Assembly (NCBI GenBank): GCA_009103225.1
Contig: RHPI01002568.1
Location: 13,742 to 77,741 of the forward strand
DNA from: Chlorokybus atmophyticus
Lineage: Eukaryota; Plantae; Mesostigma and Chlorokybus algae
DNA length: 64,000 bases
Reading direction: 5' to 3'
Position 1 is the stretch's first letter; each line of letters opens with the position of its first letter. Under the pieces are notes generated by a model. That model searched no databases, was not told where the DNA came from, and saw only the letters and a list, made by a program, of their open reading frames with translations. Position numbers and translations under genes: made by a program. Positions 1-57,974 of the stretch are shown piece by piece.

Positions 1-132
1 AACAGCCTTCACCATGCTAAGAGACTGTCGATCAACTTAGTGCACTTGCTGCCCTGCTGTGATCTCCACTGTCAGCCGATGGTGCCATTGCATGTGGTGT
101 GTCACTGACTGCAAGATTGCTTCAGGCATCCC

Positions 133-3100
133 GTGCTTGGACAGCCGACTGTTAATTTGGCCGGCACCAGCAATGAAGCGGCAGCTACACTTCACGAAAG
201 GGAACAGTCAGGTGGACAGCCGACTTTCGATGTTGCCAGCACCAGCAGTGCCGCGACAGCTCCACTTCAACATCAGGCTGATCCACAGCCGACTGTCAAC
301 ATGCCCAGCTCCAGCAGCGCCGCAACTGCTCCACTTCAGCATCAGTCGGATCGACAGCCGACTGTTGACATGCCAATTGAAGACATGTTTGAGCCTCTTG
401 GTAGCGATGATGATGATCCAGAACAGCAAGAAGTGTCCTACACAATTGCTCTTGCCCAAGGTGCCTTGGCAAGGTGAGCAATCAACTTGTTGCGCGCACA
501 GTTGTCGTACTGTAGCTGCCCATGTCTGGGAATGCTGCATGCCTGCGACTGTCCGTAGCCCACCATGCGCGCACTTTCTGCATTGCCATCCATGCTACCT
601 ACATTGACAGTCGTATGTTGCGATTGGGCAGTGGGTTGAGTTGAAGACTTCATTGGCTCACATGCGACTGGACGAGGCAGCGCAAGAAAGTATGCACCCA
701 CCGCCAATGCCTTCAGCGCAATGTGATGCACCTCAACCCGGCATTTCTCATCAACAACAGTCCTCGGAAACACCCACGCAAAAAATGCTGGACAAGTTCA
801 TGTCGTTGCTGACAAACTTGGAGGACTCTCATGCACAGCAATCACTGATCAACAACGTGCTGAAGACTGTTTTTGGTGCCGAAGACTCCATTGTACATCT
901 GGCCAAGGATCCCGCCTACAACCACAGTCAGCTCCGTAACGATCTCCATGCCTTGCTCGGCCAGCGCAACCCCTCCGAGCCGGCTGACATCACGGCCGTC
1001 GATGCATTGTTGACTTCCATCGGAATGCCAGAGTCACAGAGATATACAGCATGCACACGATGCAATTATCTCTTTCCAGATGCCTATCCATCAGGCTACG
1101 GTGACTGCGAGGACAGCTGCCAAGACGACAGTCGCCACAAGATTCTGAAACGCTTGTGGGAACAGCCGTGCGGAGGCGAATGCGGGCGCACGCGCAAGGA
1201 GTGTATAGATTTTTTGTACACGCCCATTGGTCCAAGACTCGGTCCGTGGCTGCAAGTTCCTTCAATCGCATGTGACAACCTTGCTGCTTGGCGAGACAAA
1301 GACACATGGTTCAACGTGCCAGCAAACCATCCCCCAGCTCCTCAATGGGAAGCTTGGCATGGCAGCAAGTGGAGAGAACTGACTGCTTTTTGGGACTGCA
1401 CGAAGACCATCTCTCTGCCAAACAAATGCGACTGTGGACACTACAATCATGACATTAACATGTCGCAGCACAGGGATGGTTATCAGAAATGGCATTGCGA
1501 GTGCTCCTATGATAATGAAGAGGCTGCGCAGCAGTGTACTGGAGACCCACGCAACATTGGGCTCATGCTGCACAGTGATGGTTTCAGCTGCGCATCCACT
1601 ACAAAGCGCAGCACCCTTGTCATCAACGTCGTTGTGCTCAATGGAGGCAAGCGCGTCAGCTCACAGGCGTCTTCCATCATGCCAGTAGTATTTGTCCCAG
1701 TTGACGAGCTACTCGACGCGGACAAGGATTGTCTGAACCCGTTCATGAAGCCCATGGTGGATGAGTTGGAGGATTTTTACGCCATGGGCTTCCCCACGCA
1801 CTACGGATTGGACTCCAGCCAGGTGGACATCAAGCTCCCTCATCGATTGGCTGGTACGCTCGCAAGCATCTGTTTAGCAGTGCCACGCGCACGCAGCTGT
1901 TCTTGCGACTGTCATATGTATGGAATGCATTGCTGTGCTTGTTTAAGCTCAGGACTGTCTTTGCGCTGTCAACTGCGACTGTCAATCTTATGCACTCCAC
2001 TGCTATGCTTGTATGAGTTCGCTTGAGCAAGGCTGTCCATGCGACTGTCCATTCCAGGTCCCATGTCCGACAGTCCAAATCGACAGTCGCGGCTGTGTCC
2101 CGTGCGTAGTCGCGTACGCGCGCTGCTGCGCACGAAGCAATGAGTCCTGATGCCTCCAATGGTTTGCAGGTGATAAGATTTTCCTGAGAGCCATGGTCAT
2201 GAACATTGCCGGTGACAATCCAGCCCAAAGCGAGATGGGGCAATTCAAGAATGGCGGCTTATGCGGTTGCAGGGCTTGTTGCCTGCTGGCAACTCATATC
2301 CGGCACTCTACTGTCACGAAAAAAGTCACTCAAGATCCCAGCACTGGCGACGATGTTGTTGAAGAAACTCGGAGCAACAGGACCGACTTCCACTATGCTA
2401 GCAGCCGCTACCACAGTCGCCATCCATTTGCCAAAAGAACTGCAGAGGCCACATACCAGCTGGCCGATAAAGTTGAAAGCACTGAAGATCCCAATCGCAA
2501 GAAAGAAAAGGCCAAGAAGTATGGCGTCAACGGGCTGTCGCCTTTGTGGAGGCTTTGGCGGATGTACAAGTTTGACCCATGTCAGGACATGGTCTTTGAT
2601 ACCATGCACACGCTAGCCGAAGGACTGGCCAAGAGCTTGACAGCCTGCACTCTGATGGATGGTGGGGACGAGCAGGTCAGCAAGGCTGACATCGACAGTC
2701 GGCTGTCCGTGATGAGAAATGCAAGACCAAGAGAGGTGAAGAATGGTAATCGCTGGCCACACGGCCTCAGCAGTCGCCTTGGATGGTGGAAGGCGCAGGA
2801 GCACCAGTTCTTCGTGCAATTTGGTGTGCCCTATGTTTTTCACAAGCTGCTCAGCGAAGAAAGGAGAGATCTCGTCATGTGTCTCCACATGATCTTCCGC
2901 TTATTCTTTGACATCTCACGGCGCTTTGGTTGGGATTCAGACCGCCTGGAGCTCGTGGATGCATTGCTCAGGTACTGGAAGGTCAATAGCGAGATCTGCT
3001 TTGGCACCAGTAAAAAGATTTTGGAGCACATTGCGGGAACTTGGCACCTGCTTGACAACATCCATAGACACGGCAGCCATGACGTGTTCTGGTGCTACGC

Positions 3101-4751
3101 CGCTGAGCGCGCTGTGAAGCTGTATGTCAACATCCCGTCCAACTGCAAGGATTACGAGATCAGCTTTATGAAACGTTCTGTCAGGAGATGGTTTGTGCGA
3201 CTATTTGGCGTCATGCGTGACGATCAGCGTTCAGGCCTGCTGCTCTGCCATAGAGTTGGCAACATACTGTCTACAATCTGCAAAACAGAATTCAACGGGT
3301 CCACCTGGTATGAGGTCGCCACAATCAAGCACGCAGAGGATATTTGGGCGCTTGTGGAAGCATACCCCACCCTGGCACACTCCAGGCGCATCAAAGAACA
3401 AGGCATAGTGATTGGGCGAGGCAACACTCACTATGTCGCGAGCGACGGCTTGTTCGAGAGCATCTGTGCACAAGAGAACATTGCAATTGGCACCCCGACA
3501 CGGCGGACAGTGCGCGACTACAAAGCCTATATGAGGGACGGCCTGGTATACAGGTGTGCTTTATATCTTGATTATGAATGCAGCACGGTTGTCATCGACA
3601 GTCCCACCAACGACTGTCACACAAACTGTCACTGGTGCGACTGTCCGTTATAGGGTCTCTATCTCTGATATCTACAGTCCCAGCATTGACAGCCGCGCAG
3701 ACTGTCAATGCTGAGACTGTCAAACAACGACTGACAGATATTCTCTCTCTCTCTCACACACAAGCGCGACTGCAAGGATGCTGTGATGCTGGATGGAAAC
3801 AGGCCAGCCATCGTCAACAAAATCTTCATGTTCTTTCACACCGAGTGCCATGTGTACATTGCTGTCAACCGCTACAGCCTGCAAAAAGATGCTGCTGGAC
3901 ATCAATGCATGGACGCAGACTCCGGTGCCTTGCATGTGGGGCGTTTGGAAAACACCAAACTTCTTGTCCGAGGCCACCAGCTGCTGCGCAAAGTGTGGAT
4001 GCTGTTGGAGAGACCAAGGCTGCTCCCCTACATGCTGGCTTACGATTTCAGCAACCCAGAGCTGCGATTGCGAGCAGCTGATATACCTCTGCCAGTATGG
4101 CCTGAAACCGGGGATGTGCTGCTTGTGAGACATGAGGATGAGAAGAAGTCGGTCTTTGACTTTCGCGTGCCAACTGACCCACCAGCACCTGTATCTGATG
4201 ATCCACCGCCATGGATTGTTATGTTCGACAGCCTCAAGTTGACGATGAAGGCAACATGTTGGTTGACTACCTGAAGCCTGCTCCTAGATCAGCGAGTGCT
4301 CGCCAAGGCCTACCACGGTGGGTGGTCAATAAGGACTGTCGCAACCAGAAGGTGTCACCCATTGCGGTCAAGAGGAAGCTCAACTTGCAGCAAGTTGATC
4401 AAGGCAGATGGCAAGAGCAGCCGACAACTGAGGTTGTGCGTATGTTGTACGACAGGTACATCATGTACTACAAAGCAGGCGAGGCTGAGGCAGGTACGCA
4501 TCACTTGTCTCATCAGTGTTGTTCCTTGACAGTCCCATGGACAGTCGGCTGTCCATAGGACTGTCGGGTAACAACACTATCAGTGTGTGTTTTTGGCACA
4601 AGGCATTACGCAAGGCATTACTAAGCACGCATTGGAAACTGTGAGTAACACACTTGTACATTTCACAGATTATGTACACAAGGAAGGGTCAAGCGTACCA
4701 GCAGATCTACTTGCAGCGCGCAAAGGCCAACTGCTAGGCAACTTACACTAA
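133..4751 (+). CDS. Spliced CACTA/EnSpm Tnp2 (Transposase_21-like) transposase; possible frameshift near 4213
   Basis: Family motifs GDPRNIGLMLHSDGF, FMKPMVDELEDF, LRAMVMNIAGDNPA..CGCRAC, VFDTMHTLAEGL, WKAQEHQFF and HLLDNIHRHG..FWCYAAER. Intron 1854-2169 (GTACGC..TTGCAG, phase 1) joins ORF 641 and ORF 2193 in frame. Further introns lie at ~3550-3776 and 4494-4668; the last exon ends at TAA 4749-4751. 5' exon boundaries are uncertain. Confidence 0.8.
137..372 (+). repeat. Coding tandem repeat (~69 bp, 23 aa) in the transposase N-terminal exon
   Basis: Units begin (G/C)ACAGCCGACT at 140, 215, 284 and 353. Peptide unit QPT(V/F)(N/D)x(A/P)S(T/S)SSAATAPLQHQxD. Confidence 0.8.
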
Positions 4752-7700
4752 AGCTATAAACCAGGGAAACATCAACCAGCATCAGGAGGAGGAGGTGGAG
4801 GACGAGGAGGACCAGCAGCAGCACCAGCAGCAGGAGGAGGAGGAGGAGGAGGAGGACGAGGAGGTCTTGGTATGGAGCACTGAGCGCGGTAGCTGCTGAG
4901 GGCTGATACACCTGCGGGGGTTTGCAACCACGCCCATGCAGCGGCATAGTCCATTGGACGCTGTAGCTGATACAATGGCGCTGCCGCTGGTCCTCGAAGT
5001 GAAGCCATCCCTTCGTCAAGGTCACGGAGGTGGTGCACAAATGTTGATAGCATGACAACCATTACGTCAAACATGGAAATTAGGGTAGCGCGCCTTGTGA
5101 TTTCGGGTTCCTGCAAGATGCCAGTGTAGTGCGACTCGGCGTTCCTGTAGAAGTCCCAGAACCCATTGGCACCTTGTTGAAAGCCAGTGAATGGAATGGC
5201 ACTCCGTTGTGATTGCTGCCACGCCTGCCTGATTTCAGCTGCACGCCGTATGAAGATACCCGGCCATTCGACTGGGTCCTCCCGAAATCTTTGTGGCCAA
5301 TCGTCAAAGAGCTGAGTGTTTGGCAAACGGCCCAACACTATTGTACGTTCGTAGTTTCGCAGTGCAAAAAATTGGTTGGAGACCTCACGCGCCCACTCCC
5401 TGATTCTGCCGATGAGGTACTGCGCACGATCCTGTGCTACCTGCTAGAGCTGTGCTCTGTGATCTGCCACCTGCTTGTCCAGCTGTTCTTTGAGGTCTCT
5501 CACCTGCTTGTCTAAAGCTTCTGCACCTGCTAGCGCTTCATTCAGCTTTTCGTCAACACATGGGTCGACAGCCCCTCCGACAGCCTCTGATGTTGAAGGC
5601 ACTGCAGCCAGCCTCTGCTCCAACTCTTGATAGCGGGTTTGCGCCTCTGCCAGCTGCCGCTCTGCTTCATTGGCTCTTCTTGTCGCGGCATCGACAGCCG
5701 CTGCATCGACAGCCCCTCCAACGGCCTCTGATGCTGACTGCCTCGCCGCTTGCTGTGCTACCTCCTGCTCCAGCTGGCGAATGCGCTGCCGAGAACTCTC
5801 CATCTCTTCCCCAATCTTGGCGCCCGCAGAGGAGCTGGAGGCCATTGCCAGCATGCGCGATTGCAAATCAAAGTTTCGCAATTCGAGGCCGCGAATCTGG
5901 GCGTCAATTGATGCCGCACGCTCCTTGGCGGCTTCGAGTGCTGTAGCCAACTCCTCTTGCAGTTTGGCGACCTCAACATCGGTGGTTGCAGCCCTCTGCT
6001 GCAACTCCTCCCTCTCCTTGCGCAGGTTGTCCACCTGAGAGTTGGAAGCGGCAGCCCTCTGCTGCAACTCCGCCAATTCCTTTTGTAGCTTGGCGACCTC
6101 AGAGTTGGAAGCTGCAGCCCTCTGCTCCGCATGCTCCAAATCCTTGCGCACATTGTTGACCTCAGCATCGGTTAATGCAGCCCTCTGCTCCGTCTCCTCC
6201 AAATCATTGCGCAGCTTGGCAATAACAGCATCTGGTGCCCCAGCCCTCTGCTCCAACTCCTGGAATTCTTTCGCAGCTCGGCTAAGAGTAGGTTGAACTC
6301 ATCGTTTGTTCTTGATGCTGTCTTCATCGTCTCCTCCAACTCCTTGCGCACCCGGGCGACCTCAGCGTTGGCATCTGCAGCCCTCTGTTGCGTCTCCTGT
6401 AACTCCTTGCGAAGGATTGCAACCTGTTGCTGCGACTCCGCTACTTCAAGGTCAAGAGTACGCTGGTAATACTGCTTGCGCGCCTCGTTCACACTGACTA
6501 GGCTGGTCTGCAGGTTGTCACGAGTTGCAAGAACGCGCTCTTGTCCTTGCTGTCGCACATAGACATCAAGTAAGTACAGAGGCCACAACAGATTATCAAA
6601 GCCCCCCCCCCCCTTCTTCCACAAAGACTGTACGCGATGCAATTATTCTCACCAATGCTTGTCTTGTAAGCCCGAGGGCGAATGACAGCTGTTCTGCAGA
6701 AATCTCCACAGCGTTTGCCACTTCCTCGCTCAATTTCGATGCGTCATTGACGGCCTTGCGGTGCTCCTCGTGGGCCTTCTTGAAACCTTCAATTGTATCA
6801 CGCGCTGCTGCTAGAGCCTCCTCTCCAGCTTGTGGCCGCACAGCTGGTGGAGTTGGCCGTGCAGGAGTGTCTGGCTGAAGGGGACGTTTCTTCTCAGCTG
6901 GGGGTGTAGACATGGGGGCACTTGTTCTCTCTCTCTTTCTCTTGGCAGATGGACGGGGACTGTCATGGAGACTGTCGTGAGGTGGACTGTGGTGAGGTGG
7001 ACTGTCGGCTGGTGGACTGTCCGCGCGACTGTCATAAGGTGGACTGTCCTTGGGACTGTGGGGAGGTGGAGTGTCAGGTGGAGGATTTTCACGCTCAGCT
7101 TGTCTCTCCAGCCAGGTCTTCAGTGGTGGAGGTGCGGGGTGCAAGGGCACTCTCAACTGATGGAGATGATCATCGTGTGAATGGGGAGTATCAGGGTTGT
7201 TGATCGCCACCAATAAAGATGCTGCAGCTTGTGCCTCCGCCCGTGTGTCAGCTTCGCTCTGCTCTTTTACAAGTGTACGCACAATGTCCCGCTTGAGTTC
7301 GTCAAGCCATTCCTTTCTGGACTCCTTGAAGCCCTTCTGCAGCATACCCCGGATCTTTCTCTCCCAATCCTTTTCCCAGTCCTCTCCCTTCAGTGCCAAT
7401 GCTGTCGCCTGCCTGGTGAGAGCCCCCTCTCTGGTAGCAATAGCTGCTGTCTGAGTTTTGTGCATCTCGGCAGTCTTTCTCTGGATACCAGCGACCTTTT
7501 GCAAAAACAGGTAACAGTTTAAGCAAATGTGTGAAGTGAAATGTGCACCACATGCTGACGTACCCTGATCACGTTCTCTTGTTCTATCCGTAGGTCTAAC
7601 TCCCTAATGACTTGTTTTAGGGCATCGACTTGTCTGTTTGCGGCCTCTTTCATTTCGTAGGCAGCATCATAAACCGCTTTACAAAAATGAACAGATATTT

Positions 7701-8223
7701 GACGCTGAATATGGGCTTCAGAATCTATCTGTTGACACATGCACGTGATCTTGGTTGTTAGCATACATGTCACAGTGCATGCAAGTGCACTGCGACAGGA
7801 GTGCAAACAGCAGACTATCGATAAGACTGTCGAAGAGACTGTCATTATTGGAAGACTGTCAGTACAACTCGCCATTCTTGTCTTTGCGTCCGCATTGGGC
7901 ATGCTGAAGACACGCTGGACCAAACGTATGGAGTATGCGAAGTCACTCTCGCCCAGCTGCCTTGGTGGCTTGCTGGTAAGCAACCACATAGCGTCCTCCG
8001 TGGTCAACTTCCAACTTCTCGCAAGCCTCTGCGCCGCATCCTCCGTTTGCCACAGTTGGGTCTGCCAGCAAAGAAGGCAAGTTAGCTTCCAGTGTCACAG
8101 TTGTGGAGTCATTGACAGTCTCGCATTGACAGTCGCACTAACAAGGCATGCAAACTGGGCATGCAGCAATGCAATTACACTTACTTGGTCTGTCTGCCCG
8201 TCTGGTGGCGCAGGGAAAGGGGT

Positions 8224-8700
8224 GTAGTCTAAGAGTAGCTCCTCCCCTGCCTTAATGTCCCTAGTCGCATACACAGTGACAGCTGGGTGGCCGACGTCAT
8301 CGAAGTCCGAGTAGAACATGACGTTGGGCTGAGTGTGCCCATGTGCGGAATTGATGTAAGCCGCTACACAGCCAGTGCGGGGGTGCCCGTCGATGACAAC
8401 CTGATATTGGCTTGGTGTATCTGGTGGAAACAGGTTGACGTGATATCGCCGGTGGTGTCGGATGTTGCAGATTTGCTGGTAACGATGCAAGACCTCCTCC
8501 ATCTTCTGTTGCTTGAACCATTTGCCGTCATATGGCAACAGGTAAGCCTCTGCACAGATGCGCACAAGTCATGAGTGATCCGCGAGTACACAGAGAGACA
8601 TGCACACAAAGATACACACGCACACACGTGCACGTACCGTTTGGAATGTCTTCGCAGGCAAACAGTCCCAGTCCAGCACCAGTGATGGTTGAGTCCTTGA
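8224..8700 (-). CDS. SET lysine-methyltransferase domain (split by intron 8637-8550)
   Basis: Canonical SET motifs in order: IKDSTITGAGLGLFACEDIPNG | E..LPYDG; AAYINSAHGHTQPNV; VYATRDIKAGEELLLDY. The catalytic-type DY is at 8229-8224. No Cys-rich pre-SET or post-SET region is visible. Confidence 0.9.
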
Positions 8701-9118
8701 TCAACCAGTTGTGCGTAAGATACTTGAACTGCTCGTTGACTGGGATGCGTGTGGATGCTCTTGCATCCTCCACATTATCCAGTCTCCACAGCTGGTGCTT
8801 GTCTCCAGCGCTACGATGGATGAGCTTGAGGTTTGGTATCTCCCGGTCAGTCTGTTTAATGCAGTGATAAGTAACCATCAGACTCTAGCGCAAAGATAAA
8901 CACAGACCATTACATTGGCATAGGCTGTCATGATATGTTCTCACCCTCAAGTAGTCAGCAGAAAGTTTGGGTGGCGCTTTGGAACCTGTTGAGGGGTAGC
9001 GTTTCACCTGGAATTTGTTTATCTCTTCAAGAGCACTGGCGAATTCCGCTGCATAATCCACTGCTGCGGCTTGGCGACGCCTTGAGGGTTTCCGCTTCGG
9101 TGGACTGGGTACCGCACC

Positions 9119-9119
<1 letters not shown>

Positions 9120-9166
<47 letters not shown>

Positions 9167-9168
9167 AT
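9120..9168 (-). repeat. (GAGGAC)n repeat encoding a DE acidic tract
   Basis: TCCTCG repeats on + encode QDEDEDEDEDEDEDEDEEG; the tract is shorter in copy 2 (~59868-59895). Confidence 0.85.
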
Positions 9169-10572
9169 CCTGTGGTTCTCCTGCTACTCCTGCTCCTCTT
9201 GATCTTCCTGCTCTTCGAGATCGTGTTGCTCTGCGTGTCCAGGTATGCATAGCCGCCAGCTGTTGCATTTCTTCGTACAGTTCTTTGGTCTAAAACATGG
9301 CAGGGTTAGTACGCATGTTGCAGTATGGTTTCAGTGCTGCTGTGCGAATTCAGCAACTCACATATCATGGAATAGCCTTGATGTCTGCCATCTTGCAGGA
9401 CTTCAAGTTTGGGACTGTGGGATTGGGGTAAGGGGGCAGTTGCTCATCCTGCAGCACGCCGCTGCTGGTGAGTTGCATTGTGCGTTTAAACATGTCACGA
9501 TACTTCAAGTAGTCCAAGAACACGACGGTTGCACTCATATTACAACCGATATGCGCAGGATTCAAGCAACGGCTGTCAAGTACAACCGATGTGCGCAGGA
9601 TTTAAGCAACGACTGTCAGGTATCTGCACCATGAGCCAATGCGCTGTACGCACGCGCAAGGCACATCATTGACAGTCCAGGCAGGATGTTGCAAGAACTT
9701 GGATCAAGAATGCCTGAGGGTTCGTACTCTGATGGATTGCTGGATTTCCTCTGCCAACTTTTCGAGTGTAGCCTTGTCCTCCCTCCCTCTCTTATTGCTG
9801 AGCACGCGCATCATTCGGCACAGAGCACCGTTCCAGTGCTGTGCGATTTTCGTGGGCTTGGTCTCTCCCATGCCAGGTTGGCCGTTTGCATTACGGTGAC
9901 CAGCGTGCACGTTGTTCATACAGTAAAGGCAGCCCCATATAAACTGCGGCGCTGTGGACGACCTCCTTCGAGCCATGGTGTACTGCCTGGGACTGTCCAC
10001 TGTGCCAAGAGACTGTCGACGCCTACCCAACAGCACCCTGAACCAAACCCTTCACCCCCAATCTTTGCTCAACAACAACAACGACCATGCCAAAGGTCTT
10101 GCAACGCTTGTGTACGCCGCCAACCCATAGACAGCCGTCAATTCCTAGGCGAGTTCAACCCTAATTTATCGACAGCCGCGTCGCTTTTTTGGCGAGTTGC
10201 ATTGTTGCGCTACTTGTGCGGCTTGTGTGGCTTGTGCGAACTCACAACGCTTGTGCGGCTTGTGCGGTTGTTTATGTAAGGCACTGGTCCGACAGTCCCT
10301 GTTGACAGTCGACAGCTTGGGTTGCTCACTTGCTGTGGTGCCAGGACACTTGCACTTCTGCTGTGCTGTTTGCCAGTTGATTTCAGCTGTTGAAAGGTGA
10401 GCAGGTTGCTTGCAAGCTTGCAAGCTTGGATGCTTGCTTGCTTGCATGACAGTCTCTGTTGACAGTCGACAGCTTGGGTTGCTCTAAGTGTGAAGTCAAA
10501 CTGTTTGCTCTAAGTTCAGTTGTTTGTTTAGGCAGTCCAACTGACACCAGGACCACTGGGGAGGTAAGACAA

Positions 10573-12113
10573 ATGCCCGCTGCAGCTGATTGCTTCAGAG
10601 CAAAGGGGAACCACTTGCTGGGCCAAGTGACGGGCTCGCAGTTCCTGATGAAACCAGAGTTCAAGCATATGCGCACAACGCATATCAACAACCTGGCGAA
10701 GCTGAAAAAAGAGATGCTGAGCAAGTGGCCACCACCTCAAGGCATGAAAGGCACAGACTTCAAGCAGAACGCCCAGCACCGGCAGGAGCTGGACGATGTC
10801 TGCGAGACTGTATTGCAGGTGTCAGAGCCACTGGTCTTTGACACAGACCACACCCTGAAATGGACCAAAGGCAAGCTGCTAGTAGAGTTGAGCTGTGTTG
10901 AAGCAAGCCTTCCAAGCAGCATGGCACCTTCTCCTCGGTTTTATTGTGTCTCCTTGCTTTCAGCTGTCGATTGCTCAGTAACCAGTTGCGTTATGCTATG
11001 TTCCAAGATGTGACCTCCTTGCTGATGGCTACCAAAGGACTGTCGCTGCCATGTCTCATCTGCTTGTGTTTCTGCAGCACAAATCAAGAGTCATGTTCTC
11101 CAGCTACAGTACTCTGTTGGCGCGAAGCGCGGTAGTGATTACGGGCAAAGCATGGAAGAACGCAATGCTACCAAGAAGCAAAGGCGATCCAGCGACAGGG
11201 AAGCTACCCAAGGCAGCCGCGCTACTGAAGCTGCTGCTGGCTGGGGCATGAATTTTTTGATTGGCAGGGACTTGAGGGCCAACCAGCAGGTGGTCATGCT
11301 TGCGCCTTTGACTGCTGAGCCTCTAACAGATGCTCAGTACCGGGCCACTTGGCTGAAAGAGAGGTAACTATTGTGCTGTCGGCTGTCGATCAAGTTCTAC
11401 AGTCCTCACTGGTTTGCTTAGCTGTGCCTCCATGGCTGCGTACTGGATTCACACATGCTGCCTGCTGCCTGCTAACTCAGAATTTCCTAACAGGGGTGCG
11501 GACGGGTTCGCTGAAGATCAGGTGTTTGACATTGCCAACAACGCAGTAGTTGTTGGCGTCGCCACCATCAAGTCCGTATGCGAGCCAGAACAACCAATGC
11601 GAACGTACAATGTCTGTGTTACCCACTGGATGCCAGTGAGAAGTGAGGATGGCAACCTTGGCATTCGCCTACCTGTGAAAGAGAGGCATTTTCGCTATGG
11701 CCAGCTGGCAAGCAGCTGCCATGGTGGGCGTACTCTGGAGGTACATTGCTTGCTGTGGATATGCTCCTGCTGTGACTGTATGGTGCATGAGTGCAAGAAC
11801 ATTTTGTGTTAAACAACATGCAGGGCAGGGAGATGGAGTGGCCCATGATGTTCTTGGCCGGCGGAGGCATCTGTCCATGTGAGGCATGCGGCAACGACGA
11901 TCGCATTGTGGTGCCGGGTTGCATCAAGGACATACTGCCTACGACCGCAGCTCGGCACAGCACAGACACAGAGGTCAGTAAGGGCTGTTGTCAGCGCATG
12001 GCATGACTCATTGGCACGCGTTTGCTCGCACACTCACAGTAGCACACATACCATCTCTTGCAACATCACGCACAGTGTCCAACTATCTGTTGCTCACTGC
12101 CTCTCACAGACAC

Positions 12114-12188
<75 letters not shown>

Positions 12189-12790
12189 NACTTGACAGTC
12201 GCAGGCTGTCCCATATGGACAGTCGCCAATGCACTCTATTGACGGATGTATGACATGTGCAGGCTGCTGGAGCCATCTCCAACTGTGAAGATCAAGCAGT
12301 TGCAATGGACTTGGATTTTGCAGCTGCAATTGTTTGCGACACCAAACCAAACGCCCCCACTAGAGAGCAGGCGATGGACGTGTACGAGTACTACCAGCAC
12401 ATTGAGCACGCGGTATTCACCAGTCGTCACCAGCTGCCATTCAAGGATCCTGAGCGAATGGAGTCTTATCCAGACGAGAGGATCTTGCGAGCAGTTGTCA
12501 GCTTTGCAGCAAAGAAAAAGTGGTTGGTGGCCAACGATGAGGTTGAAGGAGGGTGCGAGTGGCGATATGAATCTCGCAAACTACCAGGTATGCATATTGA
12601 ACTGCAAGTCATTGACAGTCCTTGGGTAGTTGTCGAGGCGACTACACATTGCAGGGCTGTTGAGCGAGGGAAGGAAGAAAAAGCCATGGCAACCCAAGAA
12701 GCAGTGGATGCGACAGCCCTCGTCATCCTAGTAGGGTGGTTTACTGTGCTACAGTTGCATGTGTGTGTCAACACTGTATGTCTTGTGTAA
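10573..12790 (+). CDS. Multi-exon accessory gene, probable TnpA/Tnp1-like protein of the CACTA element
   Basis: Exons ~10573-10880, ~11078-11363, ~11480-11741, ~11824-11973 and ~12261-12587, with GT/AG ends. The spliced segment DQVFDIANNAVVVGVATIKSVCEP..YNVCVTHW..IRLPV..LEGREMEWPMMFL resembles the Tnp1/En-Spm C-terminal pattern (VV.G.I..P..Y.V.V..LP..G..I.WP..V) by eye. It is followed by a CPCEAC motif. Confidence 0.5.
12117..12189. repeat. (CA)n microsatellite in an intron
   Basis: Uninterrupted CA run ending at an N at 12190. Confidence 0.95.
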
Positions 12791-13149
12791 GCACAGGTAG
12801 ACTTACAGTTGTTTTGCAGACATTTGATGCACGAGTTGGCTGCATAGGCTGTCCACAGAGGCTGTCAAACAAGGGTGTCCCTGGCTCCTGAGGCTGTCGT
12901 TGGCTCCTGAGGCTGGGAGTCAGCACACAATGTGGAAAGATGGGAGTGGCTTCACATGGGGTCCAGCTGCCCAGGCGAAGGTGCAACACAACAAAGCTGT
13001 TGTCAGCTGCGACTGTCAACAGCAGCGTGCAGTGCATGTAGGAGACTGTAGGTGTAGTACATGACGCTAGCTTAATACTGATGATCATGATCAGACTGTC
13101 CTTTGACAGTCCATTCCAGCATTTTTGTGAATTGTATGCGTGGCGGATT

Positions 13150-13925
13150 GTATGCACCAGGCATGGTGCATGAAACAGCACGCACACCATGCATGGCTTC
13201 CATGCATGTGACATCATGACAGACCATGATTGGTGCACCAAATCAAGGTAGACCGCACCATGTATGGTGCGGTGCCTGGCAGGACCATACGTGGTGCCGC
13301 TTGTGGACCATGTATGCGCAACACCTTGTCGGTAGCCATGGACCATTCATGGTGCGACTGTCAACCAGACTGGCACCATATGTGGTCCACTGTGCAAGGA
13401 GGGCAGCGCACCATAATTGGTCCAGGCAATCTCAGTAACAAACATGACTTGCGGTCCGTATCCATGGACCATGTATGGTGCGGCTGTCAGTCACCGGACA
13501 TGAAGCAAGCAACAAACCATGGATGGTCCACTGTTCCAGGGGGCATCGCACCATGCATGGTCCATAAATCTCATGCATACTGGCCACCATGCCTGGTGCG
13601 TCCCAAGGGACAATGGTACCATTCACGTGAAATTCGGACCATGCATGGTCCGACTGTCCATGAAAGCCGGACCATACATGGTCCGTCAATTTCACTTAGC
13701 AGGGGAAAACCCCGGTCCTGCGTCACGGACCATTCATGGTCCTTGAACGTCAATCCGTGTGTAAGTACCTACAGGCAAGCTTGGACCGGCGATGTATTGA
13801 TGATCAAGTGGCAAGTAATTCAGGCGGCTGTAATAGTGCGGTGTAGCGACCAATGTTACATGTTGTACAACTGTATGACAGCTAGATCCATGCATCAATG
13901 ACGGAACCAATCATGGTCACAACAA
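13150..13925. repeat. Subterminal array of palindromic ACCA-N4-TGGT motifs
   Basis: About 16 copies by eye, e.g. CACCATGTATGGTGCG ~13256, GACCATTCATGGTGCG 13341, GACCATGTATGGTGCG ~13467, CACCATGCATGGTCC ~13549, GACCATGCATGGTCCG ~13637 and GACCATACATGGTCCG ~13670. Spacing is ~25-60 bp. Confidence 0.85.
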
Positions 13926-23832: not shown

Positions 23833-25312
23833 GAGTGGACCGACCAGATTCGGCAAGTGCTTCGTGAAGACACGGAGGGTATGAAAGTGTTGCAAGAGCT
23901 GAAAAATACAGCTACGGACACAAGTGGGCACTGGTCAATGCGCGACGGGCTGCTGTGGCACCATGGGCGCTTGTACATCCCCAACGTCGCGCATATCTGT
24001 GTGAAGTTGCTGAAGGAAGCTCATGACGTGCCCATTGCTGGTCACCAAGGGTTGGAAAGGACTTTAGCAAGCTTAAAACATCGTTTTTATTGGCGAGAGA
24101 TGCATCGCGATGTGCGCGACTACGTGGCATTGTGCGACGCATGCCAAAGGGTGAAGGCAAGCAACCAAAAGCCAGGTGGGTTGCTGCAACCTCTCCCTGT
24201 GCCATTGTCCAAGTGGGAGCAAGTTACCATGGACTTTATCACGGGGCTACCAAAGACAAAAGAAGGGTACGACGCTATACTTGTGTTCGTCGATAAAACC
24301 AGCAAAATGGTACGCTTGGCACCGTGTAGTGAGTCTTGCACGGCACCGGAGGCAGCACGCTTTTTCGTTCGTGAAGCATGTATTTCGTTCTCATGGATTA
24401 CCACGAAGCATTGTGAGTGATCGCGACCCGCGCTTTACAAGTAAGTTTTGGGAGGCGCTGCATAGTGCACTGGGTACCACACTGAAGTTTAGCACGGCAT
24501 TCCACCCGCAAACTGATGGGCAAACGGAGCGGGCCAACCGTGTGATCGAGGACATGCTGCGTTGCTACGTTAACGCGCGACAAGACAATTGGGAGGAGCT
24601 GCTTGAGTTGGTTGAGTTTGCGATCAACAACCACCACAATGCAAGCACAGGTGTCACTCCCTTCCTTATGAACTACGGGCAACATCCATTGACACCGTTG
24701 ACGGCATGGACACCGCGACAACATGACGTGCGTGTGGAGGCAGCTAATGACTTCCTTACAAAGTGCGCGGACATTAACAAGGCAGCTAAGGATGCGTTAT
24801 TGGTGGCACAAAATCGGCAGAAGCAGTACGCGGACGCGCATCGCCGACACCTCACGTTTCAGGAAGGCGACATTGTGTTACTCTCCGCGAAGCACGTCCA
24901 GGTGCGTACGGGAGTTCGCAAGCTGAATGAACGCTGGTTGGGACCATTTAAGGTCAGCAAAGTTATCTCGGACGTGGCGTACAAGTTGGAGCTACCCGAC
25001 ACCATGCGTGTGCACCCCGTTTTTCACGTCTCCCTTCTGAAAGCATATCGAGGACAACCGCCAGAAAGGCCACCCCCCGAAGTTGGCACGGACGGTGAAC
25101 CCGAGTGGGAGGTAAAAGACATCCTTGGTGAGAAGTTTGTGCATGGCGTACGCAAGTTCTTAGTGAAATGGAAGGGCTATCCGTTGCATGAAGCATCCTG
25201 GGAGCCAGAGGCACACTTGACTAATGCTCAAGACGTTGTGCATGCCTATCTTGCTCGACGACACCCTCGCGAGCTTCGAGGACGAAGCTCACCTGGGGGG
25301 GGAGGAGTGTAA
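23833..25312 (+). pseudogene. pol: Integrase (HHCC + DDE) with C-terminal chromodomain; frameshift at ~24380
   Basis: EAHDVPIAGHQG..CDACQR, MDFITGLP, IVSDRDPRF, HPQTDGQTERANR, WLGPFKV, VHPVFHVSLLK, and EWEVKDILG..FLVKWKGY..SWEP. Confidence 0.93.
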
Positions 25313-29244: not shown

Positions 29245-29283
<39 letters not shown>

Positions 29284-35561: not shown

Positions 35562-38027
35562 TGTAACAGTCAAGGCCAAATTCTGTGATTTTCATGGCCG
35601 TTTTAGGCCTTATTTGTAAGGTACATGTTTTTAATGACTTGTGGCGGATATCGGCGAGTTATGAGTCTGCCGCGGATATCGACCGGGGCCCCAAGACCAG
35701 TCCGGAAGGTGCCAGAAAACGGAGGGCCAGTCGAGAAGGGCTCGACCAGATTTCTGGAAGGGCCTGGCGCCAAGTAGTATAACTTGACCATATGAGCAGC
35801 AAATTAGGAGATCTTTGGTGCGTTGGAAAGGTCTAGAAGTGTACTACAAGATTCTACAAGAATATCTTAGCTTCTAGGTCCGTCTAGCGCTAGAATCGTC
35901 TAGACAGTAGCATGTGCAGACTGGTAGGTATAAAAGTGACATTCTACAATTTGCAATACAACCTTTAGCTCCCTAGTTTCTTGTGTGCAAGCTTGGTGGT
36001 GGTTAGCAGGGGTTGCTAGCGTGTGCCCACCGGTGTGTGCTTGCTTGTGTGACGATCCAAGGCGCTACACAAGTCGGTGTGTAGCTTCGAGCGCATGCGC
36101 GTGCGTACGCGAGTGGCGGGGCGCGCGTGTGTGCTTGGCAGAGGGGGCAAGGTTCCGGTGTGAATACCGTGTCTTGGTGAGAGGGTTGTGGATTGGACCA
36201 ACTCACAGGTGACAAGGCACGAGCACCGTCACAACTGGTATCGGAGCACGGTTTACGAAGGTGAGAGAGGAAGTGTGTGGGCGTTTACACTTTTCATTCG
36301 GAAGCGGAGTGTAGTGTGTTAGTGGAGATGGAGGATGCTCGCATGGAAGAGCTTCAAGCTGCCATCTTGGCACTGAGGGAAGAGCTTCATCACACTCAAG
36401 CGGCGGCACAAGCACAACGCGAGGCGTATGAGCATGCGATGGCGCGTGTACAAATTCCCATGGCATCAAGCTCGCGCGTGCATGTGAAGGTGCCAAAGCC
36501 CAAGCCATTCAAGGGTCAACGTGATGGAGATGCAGTGGATGAATGGATTTTTCAAGTATCGTCTTGGTTGAAGCTCACGGAGGTGCCCACGCATCTGCAC
36601 GTGGAGGTTGCAGCGACATTGCTTGAAGGTGCAGCACTTGTGTGGTGGAGGCATCGATGTACGTGTGTTGCAAACGGGTTGGCGCTACCATTGACCACCA
36701 TGGAAGAGTTGGCACTGGAGGTCAGGCATCAATTTGTTCCCGTTGAGAGCGTGAAGGCCGCACGCGACAAACTTGCAGCCCTTGTGCAAATGGGGTCGGT
36801 GATGGCGTACACGGCCGCGTTTCAGCGATTGGTGATGTCCATACCCAATATGACCGAGGAGGAGCAGTTGGACAGGTATACACGTGGTTTAAAACCTTTG
36901 GGGCGTAAAGAAGTGGAGCTACGGGACCCGAAGACACTCGCGGAGGCTATACGCATCGCGGAGCGTCTCGACGCGTTGTACTTCAAGTCCACCACAAGAA
37001 ACACTGACTGGAGGCAAAGGCATGGTGATCAGCCCCGGGGAGGCGTTCAACATGCATGGAGACGAGGAGAACCAAGTTTAGCACTTACTAATGAAGGTGG
37101 AGCTGACTCTGGGCCTGCACCAATGGAGGTGGGTGCCATACACACGCATGGAAGTGAGGCGAAGCACGGCGGACGTGGTGAAAGAGGTAAAGGTGTGCGC
37201 AAGTGTTATGCGTGTGGGTCGACGGAGCATTTGGCGTACGGATGCCCCAAACGAAGCACGCAAAGGCCAACACCGGATGGCAACCCTCGCCGTGATCGTC
37301 GCGTCAACACCATGGAGCAAAATGGCGTGGAGCAGGAAAACGACTTCCCCCAGTATGTAACAGTCAAGGCCAAATTCTGTGATTTTCATGGCCGTTTTAG
37401 GCCTTATTTGTAAGGTACATGTTTTTAATGACTTGTGGCGGATATCGGCGAGTTATGAGTCTGTCGCGGATATCGACCGGGGCCCCAAGACCAGTCCGGA
37501 AGGTGCCAGAAAACGGAGGGCCAGTCGAGAAGGGCTCGACCAGATTTCTGGAAGGGCCTGGCGCCAAGTAGTATAACTTGACCATATGAGCAGCAAATTA
37601 GGAGATCTTTGGTGCGTTGGAAAGGTCTAGAAGTGTACTACAAGATTCTACAAGAATATCTTAGCTTCTAGGTCCGTCTAGCGCTAGAATCGTCTAGACA
37701 GTAGCATGTGCAGACTGGTAGGTATAAAAGTGACATTCTACAATTTGCAATACAACCTTTAGCTCCCTAGTTTCTTGTGTGCAAGCTTGGTGGTGGTTAG
37801 AAGGGGTTGCTAGCGTGTGCCCACCGGTGTGTGCTTGCTTGTGTGACGATCCAAGGCGCTACACAAGTCGGTGTGTAGCTTCGAGCGCATGCGCGTGCGT
37901 ACGCGAGTGGCGGGGCGCGCGTGTGTGCTTGGCAGAGGGGGCAAGGTTCCGGTGTGAATACCGTGTCTTGGTGAGAGGGTTGTGGATTGGACCAACTCAC
38001 AGGTGACAAGGCACGAGCACCGTCACA
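35562..38027 (+). mobile_element. LTR-gag-LTR chromovirus derivative (no pol, no PPT), TSD GAAAC
   Basis: LTRs 35562-36233 and 37356-38027 (672 bp, ~2 substitutions by eye). TSD GAAAC at 35557-35561 and 38028-38032. PBS 36236-36254. Confidence 0.95.
36328..37413 (+). CDS. gag: Complete Gag with CCHC knuckle, reading through into the 3' LTR
   Basis: Retrotrans_gag-like region (RDKLAALVQMGSVMAYTAAF..YTRGLK), PAPMEVG, CYACGSTEHLAYGC and QENDFPQ, then 19 LTR-encoded codons. Confidence 0.9.
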   Translation: MEDARMEELQAAILALREELHHTQAAAQAQREAYEHAMARVQIPMASSSRVHVKVPKPKPFKGQRDGDAVDEWIFQVSSWLKLTEVPTHLHVEVAATLLEGAALVWWRHRCTCVANGLALPLTTMEELALEVRHQFVPVESVKAARDKLAALVQMGSVMAYTAAFQRLVMSIPNMTEEEQLDRYTRGLKPLGRKEVELRDPKTLAEAIRIAERLDALYFKSTTRNTDWRQRHGDQPRGGVQHAWRRGEPSLALTNEGGADSGPAPMEVGAIHTHGSEAKHGGRGERGKGVRKCYACGSTEHLAYGCPKRSTQRPTPDGNPRRDRRVNTMEQNGVEQENDFPQYVTVKAKFCDFHGRFRPYL

Positions 38028-39694: not shown

Positions 39695-42600
39695 TGTTGA
39701 GAGTATTCCTACATACGATCAGCATCGACCCTCCACACAGGAGTAGAAGGTCGTAAGGACGAGCACTAGGTCCGGACTTAGCAAGATGGCATCGTCGGAC
39801 CAGACTCCGGACTCCAGACTGGAGCCTTACTAACTGCTTCGTATCTCCGCGTATACTTACTCATATTAGGCGTGTAAGAGCTTGTTGGAAAGCTCTGGTT
39901 GTAAGAAAGACAACACAGCTTAGAGCGCGTCAAACGGCTGAGTATAGCTTACGCAGTGCTTGCAAATGTAGACGTGTGTAACTGGCTGGTATAAGAACCA
40001 GCGGACAACTTGTAATAGATGAATGTGATGTGACTTGTGTATGCTCTGGTGGCGGTAGCTCTGTCCGTGTGTGTCCATGCTTGCCTCAACTACATGTGCA
40101 TGCTAGTCCTTCAACAGGTTATGGGCTCACACTACGCTTGAGGAGTGTGAGACTAGCTTGTGTGCATAGTAGTTCTACACTACGGTAGCTTGTTGGTAGC
40201 AGAGCCTTGGGTGTCAGCTGCAAGAAAGGCAGGCTCGACAGAAATGGAGGCGACCTACGACAAGGGGCAGATTGCAAAGCTGGACACCGACAACTACAAC
40301 ACATGGTGCGTGGAGATGAAGGCCTTGCTCATCCACAAGAAGGTGTGGAAGTACGTTGATCCGAAGGCACCACCACCAACACCAGGAGCGAACACTGTGT
40401 GGTCAGAGCATTCAGCAGAAGCACACTCTTTGCTTGTGTTGAACAGCAAACCGCATCACTTTCCCATGCTCACTGCATGTGAAGATGGTAGACAAGCTTG
40501 GGAAAAGCTATCAGCCGTTTTCAGAGCCAAGAACAATGCCAGAAAGTTGCATCTACGCAAGCAGCTCAGCGCACTCAGGAAGGAGGCAGCAGAACCCATC
40601 ACAAAGTATGTTGCGCGCGCGAGAGAGCTGTGGGCGGACCTCATCAACGTCGGCCACAACATGGGGGAGACGGAGGTAGTGCTGGCCATTGTTGCAGGGC
40701 TACCAGCAGAGTACGAGGTCGTCGCAACCCTGCTGGAGACGTCATCATCGGAGTTGACGTTGGACGATGTGCTACCGAAGCTGCTCACCGTGGAGCAGAG
40801 GGTTGTGAAGAAGGACGAGCAAGCGGATGCCGTCGCCTTCTACACCGGCAAGCACGCAAAGAAGAGCAACCATGAAGAGAAGTACAAGGGCAACAAGCCA
40901 GGCAATCCTCGTCACAAAGACCTCACATGCCACTGGTGTGGTTGGAAGGGGCACATTGTGAAGGACTGTAGGAAGAAACAACAGGGGCAACCTAGAGCAA
41001 GCACCAGCAACAGCGGCAACGAGCACCAACACAAGGAGAAACATGTCGCCTTCACTGCATCCAGTTCGAGGGCGGGCACAGCTTTCTGGGTGGTGGACTC
41101 TGGCTGCGATCGTCATCTCACACCAAACAAGGAGGTGATGGAGGGCTACAGGAAGCTGACGTCCACAATCAAGGTGGCGGGCTTCGGTGGCGAAGTACTG
41201 GTGGCTGAGGGAGTTGGCAACGTACGACTCCAGTGCAAGGTTGGTAACACACTACGCGAGGTGTTGTTACGCAACGTCCTGCATGTTCCTAAGGCTATTG
41301 CGAGTCTATTCTCTGTGAGGGTTGCGGAGCGCTTAGGCGCGGAGATCCTATTTCGGAAGGGTGGCTGCTCAGTCATCCTTGATGGGGTCGTGCACATGGT
41401 TGGAATCGCTGATCCGGGAGGGCTCTACCACGTGGAGCAGCACCCTAAGGACATTGACATTCAAGCCATGGTGGTGAAGGACAAGGAGTCGCCAACATTG
41501 TGGCATCGAAGGTTCGGGCATCTCAGCTACGTCAACCTCACTCGCCTTGTCGCTGAGAAAATGGTCAAGGGCATACGCCACGAGACAACGGCACCCTACA
41601 CCCCGCAGCAGAATGGAGCAGCTGAACGCCTCAACAGGACACTCTTGGAGCGTGTTCGAGCCATGCTCAACGACACAAAGATGGAAGACAGTATGTGGAA
41701 GGAGGCGGTACTCACTGCCAACTACATCCGCAACAGGTCTCCGGTGAGCTCAGAGCAGAAGACTCCGTGGGAGCACTTCTATGGAGCCACACCAGATGTG
41801 AGTGGTATGCGTGTGTTTGGATGCACGGCATATGCACTAGTGCCTAAACAGCTCAGGCACAAGCTGGAGCCGGTTAGCAAGAAGGGCATCTTCATTGGCT
41901 ATGAACCGGGTTTCAAGGCTTACAGGATCTTGCTCGAGGACACTCAGAAGATCATTGTGAGCAGAGAGGTGGTTTCCACAAAGGATTATCACAACCACAA
42001 GCAGGCTTCTTTCCGAAGATGAAGCACAGCCGGAGCATCCTGAAATAGTGGAGGCTACAGGCAAGGCCATCATCAACGATAAGGGTGAGCAGGACTCCAT
42101 TGTAGCAGACAAGCAGTCGCACCTGCAGCAGGAGCACGCAGCTCGGAGATACCCAGTGAGGGAGAGAAAGGCACCTGACTTCCTACACAAGGCACACGTC
42201 GCCAGTGTGCAGCATGAGGAGCCAAGCACCTACGAGGAGGCATTGTTAGCACCAGATGCGGAGCAATGGCAGCGTGCTATGGACGAGGAGATTGCGTCAC
42301 TCCATGCCAACAACACTTGGTCACTGGAGCAGTTACCGCAAGGAGTGAAGACCATTCCAGTGAAATGGGTCTTCAAGGTGAAGCGTGATGGTCAGGGCAA
42401 TATTGAGCGCTACAAGGCAAGATTGGTGGCAAAGGGCTTTTTGCAGCAGGAAGGTGTGGACTTCAACGAAGTGTTTGCACCTGCAAGTAAGTATACCACT
42501 TTCCGTGCACTGCTAGCTGTAGTTGCCGCTGAGGACCTCAAGCTGCATCACCTGGATGTGAAGACTGCCTTCCTCTACGGAGAGCTGGAGGAGGAGATCT

Positions 42601-44217
42601 TCATCGAGCAACCACCTGGATATGAAGAAGGGGAGAGAGGCACAGCGTGCAAGCTGATCAAGGCATTGTACGGGCTGCGACAGGCACCGCGTATGTGGCA
42701 CATCAAGCTCACCAAGGAGCTAGAGGCACTTGGCTTCACCGCATCCTCTGCAGACCCTGGGCTCTTCATCCATGCCGACAACAAGGTCTGGCTGCTCGTG
42801 TATGTTGATGATATCATCATCACCGCCAGGCAGGTGCACCACCTGCAGGAGACGAAACTTGCTTTGCAGCAAGCATTCTCAGTTCGTGATCTTGGAGAGG
42901 CCAAGTGGTTCCTTGGCATGGTGATTGAGCGCGAAAGGGCGGCTCGCACAATCAAGATCAGTCAGGAGCAGATGGTGAGAAGACTCGTCACCAAGTTTGG
43001 GCTCACTGAAGCGAAGACCAAGACCACACCGTTGGCACTTGGCACTGCCCTCATCAAGGCAAAGGATGAGGAGGTACTCGACAAGGCTCAGTATCCATAT
43101 GGTGAGCTGGTAGGCAGCATGCTCTATCTGGCAGTGTGCACACGTCCCGATGTTGCACATGCTGTGGGAGTACTTGCTCGCTACATGTCTGCACCGAGCA
43201 TGGAGCACTGGAGAGCAGCAAAGGGAGTACTACGCTATGTTGCTGGGAGCGCAACAGTTGGCATCAAGTTTGGGAGCGGGAGCACTGAGTTGGAGGGCTA
43301 CTGCGACTCGGACTTTGCTGGTGACCTCAACAGCAGGAGGTCCACTACAGGCTACGTCTTCAAGCTGAACGGAGGCGTGGTGAGCTGGAACAGCAGGCTG
43401 CAGCCAACAACAGCAGCATCTACATCAGAGGCTGAGTACATGGCAGCGGCAGCAGCAGTGAAGGAGGCACTCTGGCTTCGCAAGCTCATGGCAGACTTGG
43501 AGCACCCCATGGCGTGCATCGTCATCAACTGTGACAACCAAGGAGCCATCAAGTTGTTGAAGCACCCTATCGCCTCGGCAAGGACGAAGCACATTGATGT
43601 CATGCATCACTTTGTGCGTGACAGAGTCACAAGGAAGGAGGTGGAGTTCCAGTACTGCAACACCGAGGGCATGCTGGCGGACTTCATGACAAAGCCATTG
43701 TCACCACTCAAGTTCAAGACTTGTTGTGCAGGACTTGGCATCTGTGTTTGACTACAGGAGCAAGCGCTGGAGGTCAAGCTGCTCGCGTGGGAGTGTTGAG
43801 AGTATTCCTACATACGATCAGCATCGACCCTCCACACAGGAGTAGAAGGTCGTAAGGACGAGCACTAGGTCCGGACTTAGCAAGATGGCATCGTCGGACC
43901 AGACTCCGGACTCCAGACTGGAGCCTTACTAACTGCTTCGTATCTCCGCGTATACTTACTCATATTAGGCGTGTAAGAGCTTGTTGAAAAGCTCTGGTTG
44001 TAAGAAAGACAACACAGCTTAGAGCGCGTCAAACGGCTGAGTATAGCTTACGCAGTGCTTGCAAATGTAGACGTGTGTGTAACTGGCTGGTATAAGAACC
44101 AGCGGACAACTTGTAATAGATGAATGTGATGTGACTTGTGTATGCTCTGGTGGCGGTAGCTCTGTCCGTGTGTGTCCATGCTTGCCTCAACTACATGTGC
44201 ATGCTAGTCCTTCAACA
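39695..44217 (+). mobile_element. Ty1/Copia element A, TSD GGCGC, near-identical LTRs, integrase internally deleted
   Basis: LTRs 39695-40116 and 43794-44217 (TGTTGAG..TCAACA; 1 substitution and a 2-bp indel by eye). PBS GGTTATGGGCTC 40117-40128. TSD 39690-39694 and 44218-44222. Confidence 0.97.
40244..43751 (+). pseudogene. pol: Copia gag-PR-IN(delta)-RT-RH; frameshifted at ~41975-42015
   Basis: CHWCGWKGHIVKDC, WVVDSGC, LWHRRFGH..KGI|RHETTAPYTPQQNG, RYKARLVAKG, LVYVDD, GYCDSDFAGD, KHIDV. Confidence 0.93.
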
Positions 44218-57525: not shown

Positions 57526-57974
57526 TGTTGAGATGCGTTGACAAACCTACACATGCACATGTGTGCACGCCACTCATTACCAACGCCAAGAGGCTGCAAC
57601 AACAAGTCTAAGACTAAGACCATCTATTGCCATCATGTCCGCGGGTTTTATACCCGCCAGGAATACACCTGTCTACTCTAGAAGCTACCACGTTCGCTAC
57701 ACGTATTCGAATGCTGCGTTCTAAGAAGCATCTTGTAGCTATTTCCAAGGGCTATCTACTAAGCTCTAGAACGCCCAAATCGGTGCAGTAACCACCGAGT
57801 TATGACGATTCTCGTGCAGGCCTGGAAGTCGCCAGACTCCGGACTCGAGTCCGCGCCTGGAACCTTCACGCGCCTGGAACTTTCGACTTGAGTCCTCGCC
57901 TAGAGCCTTCTCGCGGCCATTCCTAATCAGAGGGCAAGTTGACCGTCCGCCTGGATGTAGGAATATCTTCAACA
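57526..57974 (-). repeat. Solo LTR of related Copia family D, decayed TSD (TTGGG/TCGTG; empty site TTGTG)
   Basis: TGTTGA..TCAACA ends and the same CGCCTGGAA U3 repeats. The empty site is visible in copy 1 at ~7229-7233. Confidence 0.88.

Follow-up and report, generated by a model that had tools for sequence, protein, structure and literature searches.

We analysed a 64,000-nucleotide stretch of DNA from the green-lineage alga Chlorokybus atmophyticus (contig RHPI01002568.1, positions 13,742 to 77,741; hereafter, the window), which begins inside a CACTA-like transposon. The heptamer GACWGTC was strongly enriched in this transposon and its second copy, where it lay mostly in non-coding DNA. 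The heptamer would lie at the core of a 9-10-bp oriented cis-element that reads TTGACAGYC on one strand and GRCTGTCAA on the other, multiplied through those parts of the transposon that tolerate change, namely introns, promoters, untranslated regions (UTRs), spacers and in-frame low-complexity coding repeats. With confidence and doubt about equally balanced, we propose that the heptamer arrays are family-specific binding sites comparable to those of the VANDAL/VANC or Spm-TnpA systems, that a protein with sequence-specific DNA recognition reads them, and that this reader is probably encoded by the element family. A single expressing copy could thereby recognise the whole family in trans, the protein acting over the entire element body. 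The bound protein would likely act on transcription or chromatin state, as VANC21 does on VANDAL21 and TnpA on the Spm termini. Enrichment, confinement, non-coding bias, an oriented site, direct arrays, tandem-unit turnover, a lack of strand bias and a neutral-looking decay were observed directly; from them we infer binding of the site by a protein, the identity of that protein and the effect of binding.

Copy 1 of the transposon occupies positions 1-13838, with its 5′ part upstream of the window. Copy 2 (50244-64000) covers the region from gene 2 to the gene 3 promoter and is 85-95% identical to copy 1. The whole window contained 61 exact GACWGTC heptamers, compared with 10.7 (standard deviation 3.3, maximum 22) in dinucleotide shuffles. 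Forty-nine fell within 23-13658, none within 13659-55544, and 12 within 55545-63997. Markov models of order 0-3, trained on the element's own sequence, predicted 1.8-6.3 occurrences versus the 49 observed, and GACWGTC was the top-ranked 7-mer by enrichment when positions 1-13660 were compared with the neighbouring 41 kb (49 versus 0). A first-pass annotation of this DNA had estimated about 45 copies, with about 1.7 expected, and a near-absence between 14 and 50 kb; the estimates were accurate, and the empty interval was borne out. In the window, the heptamer was restricted to family copies, with 49 in the 13.7 kb of copy 1, 11 in the segments of copy 2, and 0 in 36-42 kb of other transposons. 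The enrichment thus contrasts the element with the flanking 42 kb of other transposons, not with host genes. In the element body, the mean spacing corresponds to one site per ~ 280 bp. The zero in the flanking DNA is only weakly below the 2-6 occurrences expected, and an active depletion of the heptamer there was rejected, the deficit being non-significant under the higher-order models. We also noted a lone GACAGTC at 55545, which falls within a copia-type insertion of copy 2 and is probably there by chance.

The element carries three genes in the window. Gene 1 (124-4750, plus strand) is the 3′ part of a tnp2/CACTA-like transposase gene with a sub-threshold match to Pfam Transposase_21. Gene 2 (4772-9268, minus strand, seven exons) encodes a SET-domain protein with a long coiled coil, and gene 3 (10573-12737, plus strand) consists of six putative exons, each with an open frame. 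According to the splice models built in this analysis, 39 of the 49 heptamers resided in 4.53 kb of non-coding DNA (8.6 per kb) and the other 10 in 9.24 kb of coding DNA (1.08 per kb; binomial p = 3e-11). Twelve of the 16 introns, UTR introns included, contained either the exact heptamer or the variant GGCTGTC; the four that lacked both were all short (68-103 nt). The heptamer was present in all five in-window introns of gene 1, in introns 3 and 4 of gene 2, and in the promoter, the 5′ UTR intron and introns 1, 4 and 5 of gene 3. Further copies were located in both promoter regions, the 3′ spacer and the subterminal block. The latter contained only two exact heptamers, and the sites as a whole spanned 23-13658 across all genes.

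The sites formed distinct clusters. In gene 1, intron 2 held six exact copies and one GGCTGTC (1907-2088), and intron 3 held five exact copies and one variant (3597-3721), with inverted pairs that fold as a hairpin. Intron 4 contained a near-perfect 64-nt inverted repeat (4515-4578) with four motif units. In gene 2, a four-unit array with 12-17-bp units was found in intron 4 (7813-7860), and a direct motif pair in intron 3 (8114-8134) belongs to a 23-24-nt two-site module that recurs at 3700-3723. On the promoter side of the same gene, a 40-bp tandem duplication, each unit of which ends in GRCTGTC, was accompanied by one further site (9541-9677). The divergent promoter and 5′ UTR of gene 3 contained three motif pairs (9991-10467), two of which head a ~ 150-bp tandem unit. 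Another group was located in intron 4 of gene 3 (12194-12224). It adjoins a (CA)42 microsatellite (12105-12190, ending in N at ~ 12189) that lies just ahead of it; a second (CA)n/(TG)n run was seen at 29247-29283.

Six of the ten coding copies belonged to a single in-frame array in exon 6 of gene 2 (6958-7048), built of 12-, 15- or 30-nt units, all multiples of three, that encode DSPP-type repeats. This agrees with the first-pass description of a coding SPP-rich exon. The remaining clusters named there also exist, by our coordinates at 1907-2088, 3597-3721, 4528-4565, 7825-7860, 8114-8134, 10291-10467 and 12194-12224, and our splice models place sites in introns of all three genes, as had been stated, with the exception of 10291-10310, which belongs to the promoter or a 5′ UTR exon of gene 3. 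Related composite words occur in a 69-nt QPTV coding repeat of the transposase gene (140-360). In both low-complexity coding repeats, DSPP in the SET protein and QPTV in the transposase, the unit lengths are divisible by three, as though the disordered linkers of the encoded proteins could accommodate arrays at the DNA level.

The site itself was oriented. The heptamer had earlier been described as palindromic, a view contradicted by its variants: GGCTGTC occurred 25 times in the element and once in 36 kb outside, whereas its mirror, GACTGCC, occurred three times in each. The remaining one-mismatch variants, pooled, were near background. The oriented unit is GRCTGTC(A)(A), or TTGACAGYC on the other strand, and the element contains 74 GRCTGTC. 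After the sites were oriented by their central base, the flanks were asymmetric, with T never found at position 0 and almost never at position 8, and with preferences for G at − 1, A at + 8 and + 9, and T at + 10. An oriented site with informative flanks, in which GGCTGTC is enriched and its mirror is not, fits a single protein-DNA interface, not a simple repeat.

The protein at that interface might belong to the host. The core TGACAG/CTGTCA is the classical site of TALE homeodomain proteins (KNOX/BELL/MEIS/TGIF), and the element might have accumulated enhancer-like sites for a host factor, e.g. a regulator of life-cycle stage, to time its own expression. Recognition of TGACA(G) by TALE homeodomains is documented (PMC6158717). 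Twenty-four of the 49 exact copies read TGACAGTC, TTGACAG itself was enriched (22 versus 2), and motif pairs occur within the divergent promoter at 9.5-10.5 kb. However, the full TGACAG is present in only half of the sites, the others having C or G (in one case T) at that position, and the invariant GAC-W-GTC reaches beyond the TALE core. Moreover, the majority of sites are found deep within introns over a length of 14 kb, away from promoters, and the 42 kb of neighbouring DNA has none. We therefore consider the host-factor explanation unlikely.

The units were arranged mostly as direct repeats. Among neighbours up to 40 bp apart, 23 pairs were direct and eight inverted, and spacings of 12-15 bp dominated. 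At several of the clusters, Tandem Repeats Finder detected small arrays of period 12, 13, 15 or 40. Around the motif, non-coding segments of different genes shared similarity over no more than 25 nt, which ruled out an origin of the introns from one longer inserted repeat. These arrays, the different unit numbers in the two copies, and the lack of excess motif conservation between copies that are both dead would also suit a non-functional by-product, i.e. a short motif-bearing unit spread by replication slippage and micro-duplication in unconstrained DNA, which left recent repeat debris with no reader. Slippage, however, is local. The same 7-10-mer word occurs in at least 17 separate non-coding segments of the three genes with unrelated flanks, so local duplication alone is insufficient. 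Such debris also leaves the oriented variant spectrum unexplained, and no other word in these introns behaves alike. We assign this explanation a low probability.

Relative to the sense strand, the intronic copies were evenly divided, with 14 sense-T and 14 sense-A (n = 28). Only two of the 16 introns folded markedly better than their shuffles (z < − 3), namely introns 3 (z = − 4.4) and 4 (z = − 5.7; 4496-4676) of gene 1, in which inverted motif units form 30-64-nt hairpins. One hairpin is the inverted repeat at 4515-4578, and a second lies at ~ 3675-3720 in intron 3; both could be small-RNA precursors or cruciforms. The two structured introns give some substance to an RNA-level element, either an intronic splicing signal or hairpins yielding small RNAs from element transcripts. 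This is quite improbable, since orientation on the sense strand is balanced and 14 of the 16 introns have ordinary folding energies, motif-rich ones included, folding like random sequence. In addition, many sites are located in promoters and in untranscribed or terminal spacer, and no Rfam family matched. The 14:14 orientation, the mostly ordinary intron folding and the lack of relatedness among the flanks favour reading at the level of double-stranded DNA over reading of the RNA.

The second copy allowed us to follow the fate of individual sites. Copy 2 is interrupted by a copia-type long terminal repeat (LTR) retrotransposon with gag and RVT_2 (51437-56847), a 450-bp insertion (57524-57976) and a 2.8-kb insertion (60416-63197). 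In aligned blocks, copy 1 (5367-10470) and copy 2 are 94.2% identical overall. When all exons of the element were searched by tblastn against the remaining window sequence, only copy 2 and no diverged sister family was found. Eight of the 19 alignable copy 1 sites were exact in copy 2; the others included GACTATC, GACAATC, GATTGTC and GACTGTT, consistent with the earlier remark that the heptamer reappears there, often mutated as GACTATC or GACAATC. Site losses in copy 2 were mostly G>A or C>T, and five of the nine point-mutated sites were changed at the central CWG. In the array at 7813-7860, G>A changes have destroyed unit 1 in copy 1 and units 2 and 3 in copy 2. The number of tandem units also differed between copies. 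At 9541-9622, copy 1 carries two of the 40-bp units and copy 2 only one; of the ~ 150-bp unit that a motif pair heads, copy 1 has about two and copy 2 has three.

The substitutions were directional, with 140 positions changing from C/G in copy 1 to T/A in copy 2 versus 68 in reverse. The rate of C>T between copies was 7.8% at CG and 8.6% at CWG, compared with 3.7% at CCG and 3.5% at CHH; the odds ratio of CWG to CHH was 2.6 (p = 9e-6) and was unchanged when motif positions were left out. These rates were drawn mostly from coding aligned sites, so selection may contribute. Methylation of CG and CHG sites as in plants, followed by deamination, would be expected to leave such a signature, and the bias at CG and CWG hints that the host methylates CHG sites in a plant-like way. 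CWG is the preferred context of CHG methylation in plants, and arrays with a central CWG could be a methylation-related device that raises CHG density and attracts, or is read through, DNA methylation. The elevated CWG and CG rates and the five sites altered at CWG cytosines are in line with such a device, which we nevertheless hold to be very improbable. The bias is equally strong outside the motif, and motif decay thus follows a general methylation-damage-like pattern of host mutation that is not specific to the motif or its function. CWG alone also fails to explain the invariant GA..TC flanks, and the predominance of coding sites in the alignment may distort the rates.

The contrast between a live and a dead copy, drawn in the first-pass annotation, proved too simple, as copy 1 is itself damaged. 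We found a frameshift in its gene 1 near 4230. Its gene 2 contains another near 6290, reads TAG at 5444-5446 in place of the CAG of copy 2, and has at intron 4 a GC splice donor (7871-7872) that is GT in copy 2.

Several observations weigh against protein-binding sites read by the family. Pfam and ESM Atlas searches of the in-window proteins, and an AlphaFold model of a small open reading frame (ORF) described below, revealed no DNA-binding domain. Motif positions were no better conserved than their surroundings (~ 7% differ versus 5.8% overall), and a comparison of the motif with flanking conservation, suggested earlier as a check, showed no difference between the two broken copies. Since both copies are broken, however, a comparison of the two is uninformative about constraint in active elements. 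The young age of copy 1 alone can explain the sharpness of its motif. We must also note that the window offers no host-intron control, as the remainder consists of other transposons.

Four candidates for the reader protein can be named: the gene 3 product, a 90-residue ORF, the N-terminus of the transposase, which lies outside the window, and the SET/coiled-coil protein. All protein searches were run exon by exon, and joined spliced models served only for reading-frame checks; the exon models of genes 1 and 3 are tentative in the phase of the exon 1/exon 2 junction. For gene 3, no Pfam family was found at E ≤ 1 in four of the five exons tested, and exon 1 gave a zf-CCHH match at chance level (E 0.51). 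An ESM Atlas protein-cluster search with exon 5 returned no look-alikes. When the gene 3 exons were compared with the transposase and its relatives by BLASTP, the only match was a 38-residue one from Riccia (E 0.045), which we judged to be due to chance. The first-pass annotation had proposed a TnpA-like protein here; gene 3, with no recognisable domain, is not demonstrably TnpA-like.

The small ORF (9707-9976, minus strand; 90 residues) is located between genes 2 and 3, with motif pairs on both sides, and contains a CxxC…HxxH pattern. It is partly conserved in copy 2, where the 2.8-kb insertion splits it. It matched no Pfam family, and its single-sequence AlphaFold model was of low confidence (mean predicted local distance difference test score 52.8). 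The ORF might be an upstream exon of gene 2.

The gene 2 product comprises an acidic N-terminus, the SET domain (Pfam SET, E 4e-8, at 8095-8565), the DSPP-type repeat and the long coiled coil, with a spliced frame that stays open over 786 residues before the frameshift near 6290. A PDB sequence search with the SET exon gave only matches to SUV39H2 and KMT5A at E ≥ 0.02, so no substrate class can be assigned. Nothing among our results ties the heptamer to the SET protein, and the first-pass suggestion of sites that target the SET activity to the element gained no support from them.

The exons of gene 1 were placed at ~ 124-473, 632-1853, 2170-3545, 3765-4495 and 4677-4750. Its match to Pfam Transposase_21 (E 3e-4, 20.5 bits) fell below the cut-off of 28.6 and was the sole transposase signal in the window. 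A HMMER search with exon 2 retrieved 123 distant relatives with at most 34% identity; those looked up came from the fern Adiantum and the liverwort Riccia, and the transposase relatives of gene 1 likewise scored just under the Transposase_21 cut-off. A word-index protein search with exon 3 gave no match.

The 3′ end of copy 1 contains a second, distinct array. Between 13155 and 13741 we found 14 copies of a 14-16-bp palindrome, SACCATNNATGGTS, which has 18 matches in the window versus 0.8 expected. Three of the SACCATNNATGGTS copies are immediately followed by GRCTGTC. Subterminal arrays of short repeats are a feature of CACTA/EnSpm elements, and the SACCATNNATGGTS array is likely a classical CACTA-type subterminal repeat block. 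As for the limits of copy 1, the motif domain ends at 13658, the palindrome array at 13741, and the GC content drops after 14 kb. TAGTG at 13834-13838 is a candidate 3′ tip, and GGCTGTAATAGTG occurs once, at 13826-13838; the tip is given as a candidate only, the 5′ end of the element lying outside the window.

The DNA from 14 to 56 kb consists of Ty3/gypsy, copia and Crypton material. It includes a Ty3/gypsy element with a chromodomain integrase (24176-25312), a gag (36277-37413), a copia polyprotein (40160-43751) and an RNase H (44535-45563). No host gene was recognised in the nested transposons of 14000-50000.

As reported by Hosaka et al. (2017), the VANC21 targets in Arabidopsis VANDAL21 share the motif YAGTATTAY, which is dense only in copies of the family (PMC5735166). 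The motif lies in introns and in intergenic and terminal non-coding DNA, mostly in same-orientation arrays, which small tandem repeats create and reshape, with gains and losses between copies (PMC5735166). Family-restricted density, non-coding bias, direct arrays and tandem-unit turnover were all found here as well. The two systems differ in that the transposase here is tnp2/CACTA-like and not MuDR, the motif is unrelated, and the host is a green-lineage alga. Our element also carries a subterminal palindrome array and a SET gene. Neither a MuDR/Mutator transposase nor any transposase signal other than Transposase_21 (tnp2) was seen in the window, and Pfam found no VANC-family protein in the gene 3 exons or the small ORF. 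The first-pass annotation had read the heptamers as recruitment sites for an element-encoded protein; the layout matches that of the VANC21 targets, but no DNA-binding protein was found in the element.

In maize Spm/En, the targets of TnpA are 12-bp subterminal repeats. In Arabidopsis, TnpA of Spm1 needs high-density clusters of its motif, CCVTCGCAAA, for targeting; TnpA sites and TnpA-induced hypomethylation are confined to the Spm termini, and motif and lineage co-diversify (bioRxiv 10.64898/2026.08.24.746577). Our element probably belongs to the same superfamily and likewise has short family-specific motifs at high local density. In contrast to the terminal-only sites of Spm, the heptamer is spread body-wide and the termini carry the different palindrome SACCATNNATGGTS. 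TnpA-like proteins have been reported to be restricted to flowering plants, and no domain match to such a protein, with its two tri-helical helix-turn-helix motifs, was found in the window, the transposase N-terminus lying outside it.

The red-algal Plavaka elements of the EnSpm superfamily are of giant size. They carry the accessory genes PAG1-3, an accessory gene with a SET domain, and arrays of repeats to which, the authors suggest, an element-encoded protein binds (bioRxiv 10.1101/2025.02.11.637652). Both cases are algal elements, ours probably of the EnSpm superfamily, with a SET-domain gene and repeat arrays. The Plavaka arrays, however, are tandem inverted repeats beside one gene (the ParB-like PAG3), whereas the heptamer is scattered through introns. 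In our window, Pfam gave no sign of a ParB-like, 2OG-oxygenase or DNA-methylase domain.

Here, one CACTA-like algal element combines a motif array along its whole body with a second array at the terminus and a gene for a SET-domain protein. We can picture a CACTA-type family of an early-diverging green lineage that has independently evolved a VANDAL-like address code, in which an element-encoded reader would sit on the TTGACAGYC arrays of every intron and spacer and the coiled-coil SET protein would write a histone mark on all of the family's own copies; we regard this larger scheme as doubtful, with only a slender chance of being correct. If true, it would mean a transposon that directs its own chromatin writer to itself. 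To our knowledge, experiments have demonstrated sequence-specific self-recognition by transposons only for the VANDAL (VANC) and Spm (TnpA) elements of flowering plants. If the Chlorokybus element is such a system, it would be a compact, testable case, comprising a single 9-bp word and three or four candidate proteins, and transposon self-recognition would be pushed back to a much deeper point in the history of the green lineage.

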